Of a DNA stretch of 64,000 nt, positions 447 to 11,613 are shown in pieces; within the stretch, counting starts at the first letter, position 1; each line of letters begins with the position of its first letter. Both the position numbers and the translations under genes were made by a program. Below the pieces are notes generated by a model that searched no databases, was not told the DNA's origin, and saw only the letters and a list, made by a program, of their open reading frames with translations. The stretch is from Guillardia theta CCMP2712 (taxonomy: Eukaryota; Protista; Cryptophyta), in assembly GCF_000315625.1 (NCBI RefSeq), contig NW_005434672.1, forward strand, positions 488,006 through 552,005, written 5' to 3'.

Positions 447-3400
447 ATGACATCTCTAGAGCTCGCGCAGTCCAACTACGAGCAGGCATTCATGCTGCTA
501 GACGAGGACCAGCGTCGAGCTACGGTTGCGGATATTGAGGGCCCTTGCCTCGTCGTGGCAGGACCTGGATCAGGGAAGACTCGTGTCCTGACACTGCGCA
601 TAGCGATGATGATCGTCAAGCATAAGATACCGCCTCATTCCATCCTTGCGTTGACGTTCACCAGGAAGGCATGTCAGGAGATGCAGGACAGGGTAGCGAA
701 ATTGTGCCATGGTCGAGATTGCGGTCTGCTGATACAGACGTTCCATTCTTATTGCCTGGCATGCGTGAAAGAATTCCATGCTGAGCTCGGGTTTCGTTTC
801 GAGCCCATGGTCCTGGACTCCTCAGCTCAGATCGATCTTGTGAAAGAATGTTTCGGCAAGCTGAATAGCTTCCAAGCTCAGCAGATCAAGACATGGCGAG
901 CAGACAACCGGATCGATTCAGACTATGGCGATGAAGAGCTCAATCAGGTGGTGAATGCTGGGCCGTCCAACCAGGACAAGGGCACCCACCAGGCAGCGCT
1001 CTACTTTGTTGAATGGATGAGAAGGACAAAGTCGTCAGGAAGCGTACCGAAGCCGCAGTTTGCACTGGAGTCAGAAGTTTTTGGTCACTATGAGAGAGAG
1101 AAGAAAAGAAGAAACTGTGTTGACTTTGATGATCTGATTCCGCTTGCGACCAGGTTGAGCATATCTCATGTTGACATGTTCTGATCGGGTGTTGACAGTC
1201 TGCTGGACGCTGAGCGAACGCGAAAAATCATCCAGGCAAAGTCGAGATACGTATTGATAGACGAATTTCAAGATGTTTCTCACAATCAGATTCAACTTGT
1301 CAAAGTTTTGATGCAAGGGAAGCCATCGAGCATCACTGCCTTCGGAGATCCGAACCAGTCGATTTACAACTTTCTCCATGGTAAGGTGCAGGATAACTTT
1401 GGAATCTTTCTGAAAACGTGGCCATCAACCAAAGTCACGAGACTTGAGAGAAATTTTCGCTCATCTAGATATATAGTTGAAGCCAGCGCTTCCTTGATTT
1501 CCAAAAATCCTACGCAAGGCACTGAATATGGCATTAAGCCTTTCACCACCAACGATATTGGCGACAGAATTGTGATCACGAGCCATACAACTGAAGAAAA
1601 GGAAATCACCTGGGTGACCAATGAAATAGAATACTGGAGACGTGCCGGAGTTCCACTTTCACAGATGGCAATCTTGTACCGGTATGCTGTGTTTTTGTGT
1701 AGTAATGCTTTATCTGATGTTACACAGTTTGAGATCGATCGGCAAGTTATTCGAGAATGCACTCAAGAAGAGGAATATTCCGGTGGTCAATGTCTCACCT
1801 GACGATGAGAATGTCTATCGAAAGGCGCTGTCGATGGACCTGCTTGCGTACCTCAAAGCTGCTCTCTTTGAAAATGACGATGCGATGCGAAGGATTATCA
1901 ACAAGCCAAAACGAGGCCTCGGTGAATCAGCTGTCGGCAAGATCATCGCAACTGCACAGAGACATAAATGTAAGTTTTTGCAGGCGTGTAGAATTCTCTG
2001 TAACAGCAACTACGATTCGCTTCCGCAAAAACAAACGAAGGGCCTTTCTGACTTTTTGCACGTGATCCAATCAATCCAAGAGGATATCAAAAATGAGACA
2101 GAAAGCATTGTGCTTGAAAACTTGCAGCGACACATCTTTGGACGTCCATCAAAGCATGATAGTGAGCTTGGAAAAATCATCAAACACATGCAAAAAGATG
2201 TTCTGCTGGAGTCAGATGATTTTGGACTGGGTTCCAAAAGTCGAACTTCGGCTGGCAACACAACTTCGTCCAAGCTTGCTTCCTTCGTCTACATGGTCAG
2301 TAATTCGCAAATCAAAGCTGCGAGGCAGAAAGAAGTCGTAACTCTCACAACCATACATCAATCCAAAGGTCTTGAGTTCTCTCACGTATGGTTGGTGAGG
2401 TTTTCAGACAGTATTTGCCCACTGATACAGCGAATCGATGATGATAATCATGATGATGATATCGACAAGGAAACTCAATGGCGAACTATGTCACTAGAAG
2501 AGGAACGACGGCTTGCGTTTGTCGCGTTTTCACGAGCAAAGAGCATGCTTCAAGTTTCCTGGTTGGTCTCTTGCCATGTTTGATCCTGTTGTGAGATTGA
2601 TGGCAGGGTATCGACGGACTCTGAAACCGGCCTCAGCCAAGAGCCCTCCAGATATCTTCAAGAGATTCCAGAATCTTACAAACAAGGCGGAAGGGAAATG
2701 ATATCAGCCAGGAATGGAGCAAAGCCTCTTCCCATTCGAGTTGCCCCTCTGCCTGATGATTCAAAGTGCTCGAGCTCTTCAGATGCGAGATGCGCGACCT
2801 CGTCGAGCTCAGTGCCAAACTCCTTTCCCATCAAGTCAGAGCCATCCATCAGATCAGATATTCCCATCCAATCAGAGGCTCCAACGTCTTGTCCGAGCTC
2901 GATGACAAATGGTAAGACCCCTCATGCCGCACAGGAGAAAGCAGGCAACTGGAGTTGGCGACCAGACGACTTGCCATCTCGACGATGGTCGGGAGGGTCC
3001 ATGTCAGATTCTTCGTCAACCCTGTTGGATGACCTTGACCCTGGTGATCCTGACTGCGCGACTTCATGCCGGGCGGGGACAAGGAACTTCAACTTCAGCC
3101 ATGAGAATCAGCTGGATGAAGTGTCAGTAGCATCTCCTTCGGATTGGAGAAACTCTTCCTCGGCCAACTTGCCGCCTGCATATGCCCGGCAAGGGTTGAG
3201 AGAACTTCAAGTGTCGACTCCTCCTACTGTTAGGCTCAAGGAGAGTCACACCGTTCAGCGAGCGATTGACTCGATCCCGTCCCTGTTTGGCAAGCGAAGA
3301 GATCCAGAGCCTTGCGCTGACTCTCCCAGAGACGCAGATCGTTCAAACCCTTCGTCTGGCTCACGTCGAAAGAAGTTGCTTGGCTTTAGGTCGGTAGCTG

Positions 3401-3463
3401 TGCAGTTCTTGTCATGACGATGCTGATTGTTGCAAAACCAGTTGGGGCAGGGGCTGCGGATGA
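447..3463 (+). CDS. UvrD/PcrA/Srs2-family SF1 3'-5' DNA helicase, multi-exon, with disordered C-terminal tail
   Basis: Motifs AGPGSGKT, LALTFTRKA, TFHS, VLIDEFQD, GDPNQSIY, LERNFRS, TIHQSKGLEF, EEERRLAFVAFSRAK, PSRYLQEIP. Introns 1154-1198, 1682-1727 and ~2562-2616 join the ORF pieces. The 3' end is either the stop at 3417 or, via a last intron, ~3463. Confidence 0.93.
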
Positions 3464-3927
3464 GGCTGTTTGAAGTCTTCTAGACCCTTGTCTTAGTCTT
3501 GCTCAAGTTTCATGATCTCCCTAAGTCCTCGTCTCCTCTGTGTAACTTGTATCTCCTCCCAATGAAACTCAAATCCTGACAATGTTCATCGGGTTATTGT
3601 GGTGCCTTCCACTGATGGTTCCTTTCACGTCGAACTATTAGACAAGCTTCTCCCTCTATGATCTTGACTTCACGGCAGAAGGGTTGGTATCAGGGTCAGT
3701 GCAGGCCGAGCAAGTTCTTCGTCGAAGAACTTGCATGACAAGTGCCGCACATGCAAGATGAGTTGGGACAGTGCTCTTGCGCTTTGAGCACATGTAGAGG
3801 AAGGTAGATGTGGACGGTAGATGTGGACGAGGAGAAAACGAGGTAATGTGTATGAGGAGGAAAGGAGGAGAAAACGCAAAACAACCGGAAACTTGTGGGT
3901 CAACAAAATTCTTCAAGTTCTTCTCAT

Positions 3928-6531
3928 CTACTTGGGCAAAACCGAGTTGGGGTCGTAGGGGTAGGTGCTGGAGTTCTCGAGCTCCTTGAGCTTCTGCTCC
4001 TGCTTCTTCTGGTTGTAAGCCCTGCAAAGGAGGACAAAGGCGAGAAACAAGGAGGAGGAGGAGGAGGAGGAGGAGGAGGAATGTTAGTGTCCGGCTGCAA
4101 CATTGGACATGCGGGAAGCACCTGATAGTCGCCTCGGAGGCTCCCTCCTTGGGCCTTCCCCAGTTGTCAACCTCGAGGGAGGGCTCCCACTGGGGGACAA
4201 GGCCGTCCTTGAGGATGCCCTCGCCGAAGAAGATAGAGTCTCCGAAGACGTTGATGCCCTCGATCGACTTGGGGGGAGCAGAAGGGAGGCCAGCGCCGCC
4301 AGCAGCAGCCTGCAGGGCATGTCCTCAGAAATGAGGAGGGCAAGGGGGAGATGATGGGGAAGAGAAGTGGACGATGGTGGAAATGGCGCGATGGTATACC
4401 TTGGGGGCGGCACGAGGGGCAGGAGCAGCGCGAGGGGCAGGAGCAGCAGCCGCCGGGGGAGTGCTCACGCGCTGAAAGCAAGTAAGCAAGGGGAAATCTG
4501 ATGTCACAGAAGGATGCAAGGGAAGGAGGAGGAGCAGGAGGAGGAGGAGCGAGCGAGCGACAGGAAGCATCGTCACCTGAGTTCCAGGGAAGGAGGGAAG
4601 GCTGATGGCCTGAGTGCGACCGAAGAATCCTCCCGACTTGGGGACGGGCTGAGAGAACGTGAGGGGTGGAGGAGGAGAACCACAACGTCCTACCTGGGTG
4701 CCAAGGCCAACCTTGGACTGGACAGCAGGCTGGTAGAACGCGAGTCAGCTTCTTCTCGTTGCCCTCCACCTTGTCTCCTTACCTGTCTGGCAGCAGCAGC
4801 CTTGGCAGCGGCAGCAGCGGCCTGCTGCTGCTGGCGAGCCTTAGCCTGCAGGAGGCGTCAATGACCCGCCCATCCTCATCTTGCCTTCTCCACCTGGGCG
4901 GCAGCGGCGGCGGCAGCCTCAGCTCTGGCAGCAGCAGCAGCCTGAGCCTGTACAGGATGAGCGACAAGCGCAAGAGAGAAGCCAATGCTTCACCTTCTTC
5001 GCAGCCTCCTCAGCGGCAGCCTTGGCCCTGCACGAAGAGCGTCAACTGACCTGCACCCTCTGCCAGCCTTTCTTACTTGGCAGCAGCAGCGCTGAAGGGA
5101 GAAGGAGCAGCCGCGCGGGGGGCAGGGGCCGCGCGGGGAGCCGGGGCAGCACGGGGGGCAGGGGCCGCACGGGGAGCCGGGGCAGCACGGGGGGCAGGCT
5201 GTTAAACCGAAAGTAAGCATGAGGAAGAGGATGGGGAGGGTCAACCTTAGGAGCAGCCCTCACAACAGGCTTGGGCGCAGGCTTGGCGACGGCCTTGGGG
5301 GCAGAGGAGCTCTTGCCAGAGGCAGCAGCTCTGAGGGCCTGAAGGCAAAGGGATAAGCAAATGCAGAGAAGGCTAAGGAAAGGTGAAGCAAAGAGAAGGA
5401 AGGGAGATGAAGTAAACAGGAAGGACTTGGCAGCAGGATAGCAGGTTGAGAGCAGAACGTCCTTCGCAGGGCAAGGTATCTCAGGACAAGGGGGAGGAGG
5501 GTGTAGTTTCCGTAACGCGCGACTGCACTCACCGCAAGCTCGGCGGCATCGATGTTGACAGTCTTCTCAGAGAAAGAGACGCTCTGGGACAGAGCAATCA
5601 GCGGTGGAAAGAGTGGAGGAAGAAGCAGGAGGAGGCGACAGGATATCGTGCAGAGTATGAGAGAATTAGAGAGAGGAAGGGAGAGAGACAGGGAGAGGGA
5701 GCGAGACGGGGGAGGGGGGAGGGAAAGGAAAGAAGCTTCACCTTGCCGCTTCTCTTGGAGATCTCAAGCAGGGACATACCGAAGTTGTCATCATCAACAA
5801 GGAGTCCTGGCAGGAGAGAAAAGTCAGAGGTATCATCCATGAAGCAAAGCACATAGATTCTCCACAGTCATTCCACCCTCCTCCTGTACACTCCATCCTG
5901 TCCCCCGACCGTGCCCAACCATCTGTCCCAACTGCGTCCCCTCTAAACAGCTGCCTCCTTTCCCTCTCACCTGACTTGCGGGCGAGGTCGTCACGGCGTC
6001 TGCCGAGGGCAGTCTCCTCGATCTCAGGGATGTCCGAGAGGATGAGAAGCTTCGCAACCAGTCAGCCGTCCCCCTTTCCAGCATCTCCCGCCTTCACCTG
6101 ATCCTCCTCATCGTAGACAGCAGTCTTGTCGAGAGCTCCTCCAAGACTCTTGTAGCTACAGACCGACAGTCAAGACCCCGTGCTTCCTCCTCCTTCTCAA
6201 CACACAGGGAAGAGACGACGGTGTCACGGGCCGGATCCATAGAATCGCGGTCAAGATCCTTCACAGGGTATCGTCAGGTGGAGCAGGCGAGGTCACGAAG
6301 GCCACTCACGCTTCTTGGGCGCCAGGCGATGAGGATGGGAGGCTTCCAGAGGAAGGACAGCACATACTCGAGACCCTCGCCTGACCCATCGACGTCAACA
6401 TGCAGCGCATCATCATATCTCCTCCCTCAGCCGCAGCGATCAGTTTGACCACCCGATCATCCCCACCATGCTCGTGAACCAAAAACACCTCCAACTCCCC
6501 CCTTCCTTCTCTCTCCCCACCCCAATCTCGG

Positions 6532-6565
<34 letters not shown>

Positions 6566-7293
6566 GTCTCACGGAATGAGGGTCCATCGTAGGCCGGGGC
6601 AGCCTTGGCCACAGCTCCGATGCCAGGAGCCTCCTCGCTAACTTGGGAGACACCGAACCAGGAGGGGGTGTCGCACCCGGCCTGCTTGTAGGCAGCAGAC
6701 CAGACGGGGAGGGCAAAGAGAACCTGCGAACCCTCGTCAGCCGCATGTAAAGGAGAACCCCCGAGGCTGACCCAGAGTCCGATCACGGAGCCGAAGTGGG
6801 AGATGGGAGCAGTGAACCCCTGTGGCTCGCCAGTGATCTCGTCCACGAAGGGGACGGTGTTGAGAGCAGAGAGGAGGTTCTGAGCTCCCTCGATCTCCGC
6901 GGACATGCGGAGACCGCCGGCGGCCGGTCGTGAGCGGCAGACGGCGCCGGCACGAGCCAATCTTCCGCATGATGCAGGAAGAGCAGTGGGGGCAAAAGCC
7001 TCCACAACCTGCGAGACAGAAACTCTCAGTAACCTATAAGACCATGAGGAAGATGCCGATGGCACGAGGAGCACCACGACACCTCGAACCTCGCCCCGCC
7101 TCCCCCTCCACCTGCTCGTTCCTTTCCCCCTTGTCTACACACTCTCCTTCAGGACCACTACCAGTTGATCCCCCAGCACAGCAACTCTCCTATTCTCTCA
7201 GCATCTTGATGTATGGATTCCTCCCCCTCTCCTCCTCTCCTTCCTCCTCCTTACCGCCGGGATAAGCGCGAGCGCTGCAGTTCGCGTGAGCAT
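3928..7293 (-). CDS. Plastid-targeted thylakoid protein resembling the cryptophyte PSII-antenna linker (CCPII-S / Psb-gamma / CAL-II), with long Ala/Pro-rich C-terminal extension; ~19 exons, ~540 aa
   Basis: Spliced product starts MLTRTAALALIPA|VVEAFAP (bipartite presequence). It continues PFVDEITGEPQGFTAPISHFGSVIGLW|VLFALPVWSAAYK...FR|EGLEYVLSFLWKPPILIAWRPRS|DLDRDSMDPARDTVVSSL|YKSLGGALDKTAVYDEEDQ|LLILSD, matching my recollection of the linker chain in cryptophyte PSII-ACPII structures. It ends ...YPYDPNSVLPK* (stop 3928-3930). Confidence 0.75.
5108..5199 (-). repeat. Coding 18-bp tandem repeat encoding (PAPRAA)x5
   Basis: Reverse complement of the gggggcaggggccgc/gggagccggggcagc units reads PAPRAA five times; two more copies lie in the exon at ~4400-4470. 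Confidence 0.85.
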
Positions 7294-9381: not shown

Positions 9382-11613
9382 CTATTTATTCCTGCCAAAA
9401 ACCTTGATCGTCTTGGATATCCTTGACTGGGGTTGGCACACACGTTAGAACGTGCACTTGTCACAATGAATTCGCACGAACCTCTAACGGAATGTGTGTA
9501 TGGAAGATCTCTTTCCTGAGCATGTAGTGATGAGAAGTCAAAAAACCCTCCACTTGCTCCTGAGAAAGTTGTCAAATCTCGACATCACCTCTTGAGAGTG
9601 CACACACCTCTAGATTTGCAAACATGACAATGTGCGAGGGCAGAACACGAGCTGTTCGATCGCCATCGAAAGCACATTCCAAGAACGTCTGTGGCGACTG
9701 AAAGAACCTTGCAGCCGCTTTCAAGGACACGACTCGTCTTCACTTCCATTGCACCTGTCTGCCTCGTCCAGCTCCGGCGAGGTGAGACACGAGCGGTCCA
9801 ACGGATCACTGCGAGCATCTCGTACACATGGCGGAGAAGCGTGAAGCATCCTACCTGGGGCGGTGGGGAGGAGGAGAGCAGTCGAGAAACGTGAGGGAGA
9901 TGTTCCTGTGCAGAACGCTGTTGCGCGTGTCAATTGGGTCCCAAATCGAGCCCGCTCGTCATGAAATTGAGCATCATCAATCATCATCACCGCACAAGCA
10001 CCAGCACCATCTTGAGCAGATGAGAGTGACTGACCTGTAGAAAGGAGTCGAGTGGCATGGCATCAGGAACAGAACGCTAGTCACGTCGTCATGCCTCAGC
10101 CACCTCACGACGTCCACCTGCTCCAGCAGCAGAACATCATCGCAAAAGAGGCTGAAGAAAGAGGCTAAGGTAAAACACCCACCACTCCTCTCTGATGCAC
10201 TAGGGACAAGTAGAGGGCCGGGGCCAGGTTGGTCGCCAGCAAGCCGACGGATGCGAGGAGCCATAGTCTCTGCGCCTCCTGTCAGACTCTCGACGGGGAG
10301 ACGCCATGCCGTCAACTAACGGGCGACTTGCTCAGCTCGTGGAGCCCTGCACCGGCAAAACACATGCAGACAGGAACGATCGGGAGCAGAAACCTGAACT
10401 CCTTATGAGCTAGCAAACTGACCCAAGTCAACATGTCATTGAACACAGAAAGACGACGACGGGAGTACAACCTGTGCATGACTGTTGTGACGATTACACA
10501 TTCCAGGAGCTCACGATGAAAACGTTTTCTCATGCCGTAGAAAACCAGAGGAATCGAAGTCATCAGAAGCGTCGGGATGCCCTGCAATCATCGGAGAGGA
10601 AACAGAACGTGAATTTTCTTACTCAGTGATGCCCGTCTTTGAGCTCACCTCTGAAAAATACCACCACCAAACGTGTGAGCCATAGATGGATCCTCCACCT
10701 TGGACAGCATTGAAATAGAAAAAGTTCCAAGCTGAAAGTACAAATCTCCCATAGAAGTATGAGTCTATTCCTATGATCACTGCAGCTGCGATCAGGAAGC
10801 TTGTGATCGAACCAACCAGGTGTCTGTGCACCTCTCTTCTTGCAGCAGCAGCACGCAAGGCGACAGCTCCTCTACACAACAGCGGCAGCAGCATGGCGAC
10901 GCTTGTCGGCCGGATCAAGAAGCAGACAGCCATGAGCCAACTCAGCGCAACCATCGACCCCGCGGGTTTATCTTTGAGACCTGACCATGGCCAAAGTGCA
11001 AGGATTGAGGTGATCAAACAGGCTTCGACTGAGTTGACCAGCGAGCGTGACATGCAGTAGAAGAAGAAGCACGACGAGACCTGGCAGAGGATCGCGTTGA
11101 AGGCAACCTCGACTCCGAACAGCTTGCGAGCTAGCTCTACCATGGCCAGATCCGTCAAGATGGCTATGGATCCCGACCAGAGCTTGGGAATGAGCTCTAA
11201 TACATCACCGTTGTCTAGAGACAGAGCCCTTGCGATGTCGTAGAGCAGCGACATCACGAATGGCATCGCGTAGCTTCGTATCCCCTGCCTCCACTCCCAT
11301 GTGAGGTATCCATACCCGTATGCCATCCTGTGCGCAACCTCTGGCGCCTGCCAGTACTCGTCCGGGACGAAGTATGTCTGCTGGCACAGGCAGGCGAGCA
11401 GCCTGTACGCACATAGGAAGAGGACGAGAAGGCGCCGACGTCTTCCTAGGATGAACGAGTGAACCAGATCCTTCCGAGGAAACATCCGCCTGTGGGCTAC
11501 AACAAGAGAGGATAGTAGGATGAGACATGAGCAAGTAGCAGGCAAGCTTCAACTTCCTTCATCCCACCGTCTTCCTCCTTTCGCCGTCCCAGACTTCGCT
11601 CGCCATCCTTCAT
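9382..11613 (-). CDS. PIGB: GPI mannosyltransferase 3 (PIG-B/Gpi10, GT22)
   Basis: TYFVPDEYWQAPEVAH, GYGYLTWEW, IRPTS, IDSYFYG, YGSHVWWWYF, HKEFRFLLP, FLMPCHSTPFY, LTFLDCSPP. Last exon SRISKTIKVFGRNK*. The start is either 11613 or 11485. Confidence 0.92.

Follow-up and report, generated by a model that had tools for sequence, protein, structure and literature searches.

In silico analysis of a 64,000-nucleotide (nt) stretch of the genome of the cryptophyte Guillardia theta CCMP2712 (contig NW_005434672.1, positions 488,006 to 552,005 of the forward strand; hereafter the window) revealed, on the minus strand at 7293-3928, a gene for a second, long paralogue of the linker protein in the supercomplex that photosystem II (PSII) forms with ACPII. 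The gene consists of 19 exons separated by GT..AG introns of 45-246 nt, and its spliced open reading frame (ORF) of 1632 nt, open over every joint, encodes 543 residues. It is expressed at the transcript level, and its product retains the presequence, one transmembrane helix, both chlorophyll a sites and nearly all contact residues of the family. An earlier note, made from the letters alone, had proposed a 19-exon linker gene with a ~270-residue Ala/Pro-rich tail and an extra C-terminal module; each exon that it had drawn was recovered in place, and the peptide strings that it had quoted all occur in the spliced product. The tail and the module are both present as well, but the extension in fact measures ~275 residues, of which ~181 are Ala/Pro-rich (exons 10-17) and ~92 form the module.

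The transcript evidence comes from contigs of three sequencing runs labelled as probable RNA, which carry two species labels and belong to three studies. Fifteen of the 18 predicted junctions (introns 4-18) are exact in these contigs, two more splice joints were found in RNA contigs (positions not listed), and intron 18 is also spliced in raw RNA-seq reads (run X14), independently of any contig. In run X2 a single 1673-nt contig spans from 3897, in the 3' untranslated region (UTR), through exon 2, its last piece ending at 7006; the 51 letters left over would accommodate exon 1 together with a short 5' UTR. A 1376-nt contig of run X1 links the 3' UTR with exon 3. Since single contigs span both regions, the Ala/Pro exons and the linker core lie on one mRNA. 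The possibility that the tail is an RNA-level read-through chimera of two genes was rejected: the reading frame is free of stops, and individual contigs from several studies join the core to the tail. In run X5 the contig over exons 4-10 has a depth of 2696 and that over exons 11-19 a depth of 537, the break falling within the PAPRAA repeat (window 3922-5337); this 5-fold gap could reflect a coverage bias due to guanine-plus-cytosine content or repeats, or an isoform that was not seen.

The protein that links PSII to its antenna in cryptophytes came to light as late as 2024. Its solved chains are 8WB4 chain S, 8XR6 chain N, 8XLP chain g and 9L5V chains g and G, known under the names CCPII-S, Psb-gamma linker and NCP/CAL-II. 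Similarity searches were carried out with single exons in place of the joined 543-residue protein, with the contiguous segment window:6460-7134:- (open through the 48-nt intron 2), and with the database proteins P0012, P0082, P0028, P0043 and others. Exon matches to the solved chains range from E 4e-3 to 4e-24: exon 2 matches 8wb4_S, 8xr6_N, 9l5v_g and 8xlp_g (E 5e-17 to 3e-16, phmmer), exon 3 matches 8xlp_g and 9l5v_g (E 4e-24), exon 4 matches residues 153-174 of 8wb4_S (E 2e-9), and exon 7 aligns with CAL-II residues 212-235 of 284 (E 4e-3). The matches of exons 2, 3, 4 and 7 are collinear with residues 23-235 of the solved chains. Judged by sequence, exons 1-9 encode a clear homologue of the cryptophyte PSII linker CCPII-S/Psb-gamma/CAL-II, as had been supposed.

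The contact residues were mapped by placing the exons on CCPII-S of C. placoidea (P0035), with residue roles taken from PMC11133340. Nineteen of the 21 mapped ligand and contact positions (chlorophyll, ACPII-1 to -5, PsbH, CP47, D1) are identical to CCPII-S. These include all three residues matching His93, Trp163 and Leu168 (exons 2 and 4), the chlorophyll ligands in CCPII-S (PMC11133340), with the counterpart of His93 (Chl a601) in exon 2, and 16 of the 18 other contacts, the two changes being T130S and L138A. The counterparts of P184, R186, D187, T188, D208, E210, Q212 and L216 in exons 5-7 are all identical, and those of S250 and E253 (D1 contacts) are kept in exons 8-9. The probable counterpart of Arg279 of CCPII-S, outside the scripted mapping, is the ALR arginine of exon 10. 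The features common to the protein described here and the CCPII-S/Psb-gamma/CAL-II family are: (i) a bipartite presequence of the ...A/FAP type (the slash marks the cut); (ii) a lumenal N-terminal loop; (iii) one transmembrane helix; (iv) the His and Trp chlorophyll a sites; (v) the ACPII-binding and core-binding motifs; (vi) collinearity up to the ELAxLRA helix.

The known members have 284-297 residues and end ~6 residues past the ELAxLRA helix, whereas the G. theta protein has 543 residues, ~275 more. The claim that solved linkers end near that helix held: P0035 terminates in ...ELAALRAEAAKK, directly after it, and K285 is the last contact residue of CCPII-S (PMC11133340). About 30 of ~40 family clusters terminate in a ...ELxxLRAEAAKK-like sequence at 270-290 residues. 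The structural papers (PMC11133340, PMC11169493, PMC11316039, PMC12695738) each describe one short protein of ~285 residues, and the linker C-terminus is placed where the two PSII monomers meet, on their stromal face, in contact with CP47', PsbL' or PsbM' (PMC11133340, PMC11169493, PMC11316039). In contrast to the known CCPII-S members, the core-binding C-terminal domain of the long protein is of a distinct type, common to the Rhodomonas abbreviata protein P0028: exons 8-9 are matched by P0028 but not by the short forms P0082 and P0035 (tblastn), and exons 8-10 remain unmatched by short forms. In the PDB entry 9L5V (Rhodomonas sp. NIES-2332 PSII-ACPII) chains g and G are two different 292-residue Psb-gamma sequences, one per monomer; since they differ, at least two variants of the linker, both of them short, exist in that species.

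Searches of the G. theta genome itself (assembly of 87.1 Mb, 669 contigs) revealed a second family gene on contig C50 (~137.6-138.8 kb; L005:3594-4848, plus strand), with five exons and a product of 283 residues ending in ...EELQRLRAEAAKMK. This gene is GUITHDRAFT_164016 (XP_005829753.1, P0082), a short paralogue without a tail, given as the only G. theta homologue in PMC11169493. The gene in the window corresponds to GUITHDRAFT_149878 (XP_005841816.1, P0012), annotated at 214 residues. The earlier note had offered a paralogue or a full-length form and had found the gene missed by the list of ORFs; a paralogue it is, not a longer form of the known linker, and the public annotation does not miss it wholly but carries it as a truncated model. 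That model has an identical start, with RNA contig depth present over exon 1, and is correct for exons 1-6; it then reads past the intron 6 donor (VKAGDAGKGDG, stop; window 5971-6098), so that 13 exons are missing from the public annotation. A literature search with both locus tags and accessions, and for thylakoid proteins with a WW domain, found nothing relevant.

Over the core from the helix to YDEEDQ, protein identity between the paralogues is 88-95% and DNA identity 79-84%; in exon 3, 46 of 49 residues agree at a nucleotide identity of 84%. Their N-terminal regions are ~50% identical. About one third of the codons for identical residues differ, and no 31-mer is shared. High protein identity with low DNA identity and many synonymous differences indicates an old duplication with the core under purifying selection. 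The core of the long gene is cut by nine introns, against four in the short paralogue, and two positions are shifted: the intron in the transmembrane helix lies five codons earlier in the short gene (HFAS/VIGLW vs VIGLW/VLF in the long one), and the next is offset by 5 nt (PSFRE/GLE, phase 0, in the short gene vs a split PSF-R, phase 1, in the long one). Introns 4, 5 and 6 of the long gene are without counterpart.

The Ala/Pro-rich part of the extension (exons 10-17, 181 residues) contains 41% Ala and 16% Pro, with 27 Lys and Arg against three Asp and Glu, a net charge of +24. The region of exon 10 is 53% identical to the last 36 residues of P0028, and its RNA junctions are 5337/5532 and 5198/5246. 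The segment of exons 12-14 is probably helical; the matching Ala/Gln stretch of a Hemiselmis tail (residues 307-334) is the sole confident helix in the AlphaFold2 model of that protein, with a predicted local distance difference test score (pLDDT) of ~81 there and 50 overall. Comparison of the exon 16 motif with the Hemiselmis tails gave p ~0.02-0.08 in a shuffle test, a value that is suggestive only. The use of FFG[RK]TQ as a mark of other G. theta genes was rejected, the three further DNA matches lying in unrelated, stop-ridden contexts and being due to chance. The Pro-rich arms are devoid of canonical PPxY or PPLP motifs.

The last 92 residues, encoded by exons 18 and 19, are mildly acidic and aromatic. 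A search with this C-terminal part had been proposed, and 49 residues of exon 18 were run against 1.84 billion representatives (HMMER); there were eight hits, all small proteins of 76-213 residues, and no relative in Pfam or PDB. One hit, P0008, is a low-complexity repeat protein, and the other seven match at E 1.5e-10 to 5e-4 (phmmer). The relatives share a C-terminal domain of 90-95 residues that covers both exons 18 and 19 (alignments A1 and A2), with 12 invariant columns in A2, which includes exon 18 of the gene described here: F, G, E, L, K, W, W, G, P, A, S and T. The module had also been described as structured-looking; it is conserved, yet AlphaFold2 leaves it mostly unfolded on its own, with one helix and a pLDDT of 58. 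When exons 8, 16 and 18 and the P0011 module were each compared with the sequences in the PDB, no chain matched up to E 10.

Five of the module relatives, P0004, P0005, P0010, P0011 and P0063, have a WW domain (PF00397), recognised in P0004, P0005 and P0010 at E values from 6e-8 to 7e-12. P0005 belongs to the cryptophyte Baffinella frigidus and the other four come from marine metatranscriptomes. These proteins have 148-213 residues, are apparently soluble, and possess the WW domain in place of the PSII linker core; in the complete ones it is preceded by a signal ending in ...A/FAP. A cryptophyte-style presequence would direct them to the plastid stroma, the compartment where the linker tail emerges. 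P0003 contains the module only, following a hydrophobic segment and a Pro/Ala/Arg-rich stretch, and its N-terminal part represents a membrane anchor plus spacer or else a bipartite presequence. In the WW-module proteins and P0003 the module is 41-57% identical to exons 18-19 over the aligned stretch. None of the nine exons of the long gene that were searched gave any Pfam hit, to a WW domain or otherwise, and no paper on the WW-module proteins was found.

Within the G. theta genome the A2 profile matches the gene described here at E 8e-27 and, apart from it, just one partial copy of 24 residues, situated on contig C33. No separate WW-module gene was found in the genome, the WW hits on other contigs being unlinked to the module. 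C33 was rejected as a second full module or WW-module gene, as only 21-24 residues (NFFGDSVFFGEAFLKDQLVP) match. The exon in question (~649.4 kb; L006:5405-5509, minus strand) encodes ...EINFFGDSVFFGEAFLKDQLVP and holds the first module sub-motif only, at 76% over 21 residues; neither the DNWG part, nor the STYP part, nor a WW domain was found near it.

Tails occur outside G. theta as well. Published members end after the helix, but homologues in the transcriptomes of R. abbreviata and Hemiselmis rufescens are partly tailed; these tailed relatives are known from (unpublished) transcriptomes only. The R. abbreviata protein P0028 (EP00286...P009787; 309 residues) has the long-type C-terminal domain (..NFG.SL.EIS.., SFSEKTVNI..ELAALRAAA) followed by Ala/Pro/Lys sequence, and its stop inside the spacer is possibly a truncation. 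A maximum-likelihood tree built on the shared core pairs it with the long G. theta protein at 87/78 support, inside the Rhodomonas/Guillardia-type sequences. Fragments below 203 residues, P0013, P0017 and P0023 (whose C-terminal sequence is unlike the family) and five rows without the anchoring motifs were excluded from this tree. H. rufescens has a tailed protein, P0043 (EP00283...P027152; 373 residues), and a short one, P0056 (280 residues); P0044 (360 residues) resembles P0043. The tails of P0043 and P0044 have ~90 residues and consist of a Pro/Ala/Lys spacer, an Ala/Gln helix, a Gly/Pro/Val segment and ..IPK..G.IPFFGKTQR before the stop, which is the order of exons 10-16 of the G. theta gene. 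All three proteins, P0028, P0043 and P0044, lack the second PAPRAA spacer and the end module, both present in the G. theta gene. A pair of short and tailed linkers occurs in at least two, probably three genera. Two further candidates for a long form were rejected. P0057 (H. rufescens, MMETSP1357; 367 residues) equals P0056 in its N-terminal two thirds and P0043 in its C-terminal third and tail, and is probably no third gene but a chimera made in transcript assembly, joined across the conserved core; in P0013 (359 residues) the sequence after the core is unrelated.

Table 1. Exons of the long linker gene, with repeats and neighbouring genes, in window coordinates
Feature	Position	Strand	Content
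Start codon	7293-7291	-	ATG
Exon 1	7255..7293	-	Start codon; signal-peptide portion of bipartite plastid presequence (MLTRTAALALIPA)
Exon 2	6772..7008	-	...VEA/FAP cleavage-type motif, transit peptide, lumenal N-terminal loop, first half of transmembrane helix
Exon 3	6573..6723	-	Second half of transmembrane helix (VLFALPVWSAAYK) and stromal loop of ACPII-binding motif
(CAT)11 microsatellite	6532-6565		Intron 3; perfect
Exon 4	6310..6380	-	EGLEYVLSFLWKPPILIAWRPRS; Trp equivalent to CCPII-S Trp163 (Chl a602 ligand), Leu equivalent to Leu168
Exons 5-7	6258-6206, 6155-6098, 6049-5971	-	ACPII-1/2, PsbH and CP47 contact region (DPARDTVVSS, YDEEDQLLILSD)
Exons 8-9	5806-5742, 5583-5533	-	Core-binding C-terminal domain, long type (NFGMSLLEIS..., SFSEKTVNIDAAELA), reaching ELAxLRA helix
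Exon 10	5246..5338	-	End of ELAALRAA helix, then Pro/Ala/Lys-rich spacer
Exon 11	5077..5198	-	Five PAPRAA repeats
DNA tandem array	5110-5198		18-nt period x4.9, or 36-nt unit at 97% match
Exons 12-14	5027-4994, 4947-4894, 4845-4783	-	~50 residues, Ala/Gln/Lys-rich
Exons 15-16	4729-4694, 4648-4577	-	Gly/Pro/Val-rich, motif VGLGT..PVPK..FFGRTQ (FFGRTQ at 4627-4610)
Exon 17	4400..4471	-	Second Pro/Ala/Arg spacer, two perfect PAPRAA units
Second PAPRAA DNA repeat	4413-4447		18-nt period x1.9
Exons 18-19	4309-4122, 4021-3931	-	Module LP..N.FGD..FFGEG.LK....P.W...LE.DNWG.P...AS.AT ... KEL.N.STYP....PK
(AGG)10 microsatellite	4050-4080		Intron 18; perfect
Stop codon	3930-3928	-	TAG; RNA contigs continue ~30 nt beyond, to 3893-3897
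UvrD/REP-type helicase gene	447-3417	+	PF00580, PF13361; convergent, 3' ends ~500 nt apart from linker gene
Alg9-like mannosyltransferase gene	10619-11545	-	PF03901

Neither of the neighbouring genes is related to photosynthesis. Both trinucleotide microsatellites are intronic, and the (CAT)11 run of intron 3, when read in frame on the gene strand, gives a run of Met.

The interpretation that we consider fairly probable, with evident reserve, is that the long paralogue threads into PSII-ACPII and tethers a stromal or thylakoid-surface partner by a flexible arm. The long linker would sit in a PSII-ACPII monomer at the site of the short linker, so that the two paralogues would be alternative occupants, the long one in a minority of monomers. 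From the dimer interface, on the stromal side, the ~275-residue extension would project as a flexible arm invisible to cryo-electron microscopy. The arm would be basic, in part polyproline II-like and in part helical, and would comprise in order a basic Pro/Ala PAPRAA spacer, an Ala/Gln helix of ~50 residues, FFG(R/K)TQ, a second PAPRAA spacer and the acidic aromatic module of ~92 residues. One or two docking segments (FFGRTQ and the module) would thereby be kept at least several nanometres away from the surface of PSII. The module would probably become ordered only on the surface of its partner, as the linker core does on PSII, because AlphaFold2 leaves the module unfolded alone. The partner would be a stromal or thylakoid-surface component tethered to a subset of PSII.

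A more specific version sees the gene as a Rosetta-stone fusion: in other cryptophytes a stromal WW-module protein would dock non-covalently, through its WW domain, on the Pro-rich arm of a tailed linker; in Guillardia, where the separate WW-module gene is absent, the module is fused to the arm. Arm and module would then be a cryptophyte-specific device that connects the stromal centre of the PSII dimer with another complex or with the membrane opposite, serving for example the pairing of thylakoids or the lateral arrangement of PSII and photosystem I (PSI). We regard this version as improbable as it stands. Psb-gamma has been compared with the red-algal phycobilisome-PSII linkers LPP1 and LRC3 (PMC11169493). 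The likeness of the long form to these is one of analogy only, namely a stromal thread that binds the PSII core and continues into a membrane-extrinsic part binding something else. The tail and module differ from LPP1 and LRC3 in having no detectable similarity to any PDB chain (exon 16, exon 18 and P0011 module; E up to 10). A further difference is that the phycobiliproteins of cryptophytes are lumenal, i.e. on the side opposite to the tail.

Several points weigh against the tether. No usable module relative was found in Pfam, PDB or ESM Atlas that would give the partner a name. A protein combining core and module was found nowhere else in the whole protein collection, in which the longest other family member has 373 residues, and the full architecture of core, tail and module may be confined to Guillardia. 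The tailed forms of Hemiselmis group with the Hemiselmis short forms, so that the tailed forms of the two lineages stand apart in the tree, and homology between the Guillardia and Hemiselmis tails, which rests on a short collinear motif and is statistically weak, is at most suggested by the sequences. The domain of exons 7-9 differs from that of the short forms, and its fit to the PSII core could differ as well. With the public model ending at 214 residues, earlier proteomics could not have detected the tail, and the long form is known from gene and transcripts alone. It is probably a minor transcript, judged from contig depth, a poor measure of expression: a contig of the short paralogue, laid partly on exon 3, is far deeper (~2771 vs 161 in run X1).

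Four other explanations were considered. The cationic tail may bind electrostatically to acidic stromal surfaces or lipids, on the facing membrane or on neighbouring supercomplexes, and so help thylakoid pairing. Basic N-termini of LHCII play a similar adhesive part in plant grana, and cryptophyte thylakoids are typically paired. The excess of 27 basic over three acidic residues in 181 and the origin of the arm in the middle of the stromal face of the PSII dimer fit this explanation, and the Hemiselmis tails, which lack the end module, imply that a basic arm alone may function. It leaves the conservation of two non-basic motifs, FFG[RK]TQ and the DNWG module, unexplained; moreover, the long form seems sub-stoichiometric by contig depth, and no experiment ties the linker family to membrane appression. 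Adhesion by charge is held to be unlikely. Somewhat doubtful, too, and rather unlikely is a form specific to a stage or condition (PSII assembly or repair, light, nutrients), whose tail recruits factors transiently or is cleaved to leave a CAL-II-like subunit of ~30 kDa. With near-identical binding residues, the two paralogues would be rivals for the single site on each PSII monomer, their contigs differ greatly in depth, and the structures of R. salina (N-limited stationary cells) and C. placoidea (log phase) contain short forms only. On the other hand, a cleavage site is not evident, and processing would be unneeded for making a short protein that has a dedicated gene.

That the extension is nearly functionless, having arisen by a lineage-specific loss of a stop codon, repeat expansion and fusion with a downstream module gene, and being tolerated since the form is rare, would agree with the near-perfect PAPRAA repeats in the DNA, which point to youth, with the uniqueness of the core-plus-module protein in the collection, and with the lack of a separate WW-module gene in G. 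theta, fitting capture by fusion. An extension without function is nevertheless very unlikely, as the frame is open over 18 introns and ten tail exons, the mRNA was assembled in several independent studies, the module retains all 12 residues invariant in A2 (an alignment that includes exon 18 of this gene), and Rhodomonas and Hemiselmis also have a tailed second paralogue. Finally, the long paralogue might have been re-deployed from PSII, for instance to serve PSI-ACPI or unattached ACP assemblies, its new specificity being conferred by the tail. Exons 7-9, the core-binding domain, are indeed the part most diverged from the short forms, and ACPs are common to PSI and PSII in cryptophytes (PMC11133340), but the residues matching the PsbH, CP47 and D1 contacts are conserved, and such a change of place is hardly probable.

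The analysis shows that G. theta has two linker paralogues, against the single homologue published, the second having been hidden by a truncated gene model; it is transcribed and keeps the PSII-binding residues. A corrected gene model is supplied, and a conserved, previously undescribed plastid module is defined. If the long form is present in PSII, some dimers would bear, on the stromal side, a basic arm of more than 180 residues with a conserved docking module, a feature absent from the published structures. Such an arm would bear on the pairing of thylakoids in cryptophytes and on the organisation of PSII with respect to PSI and stromal factors.

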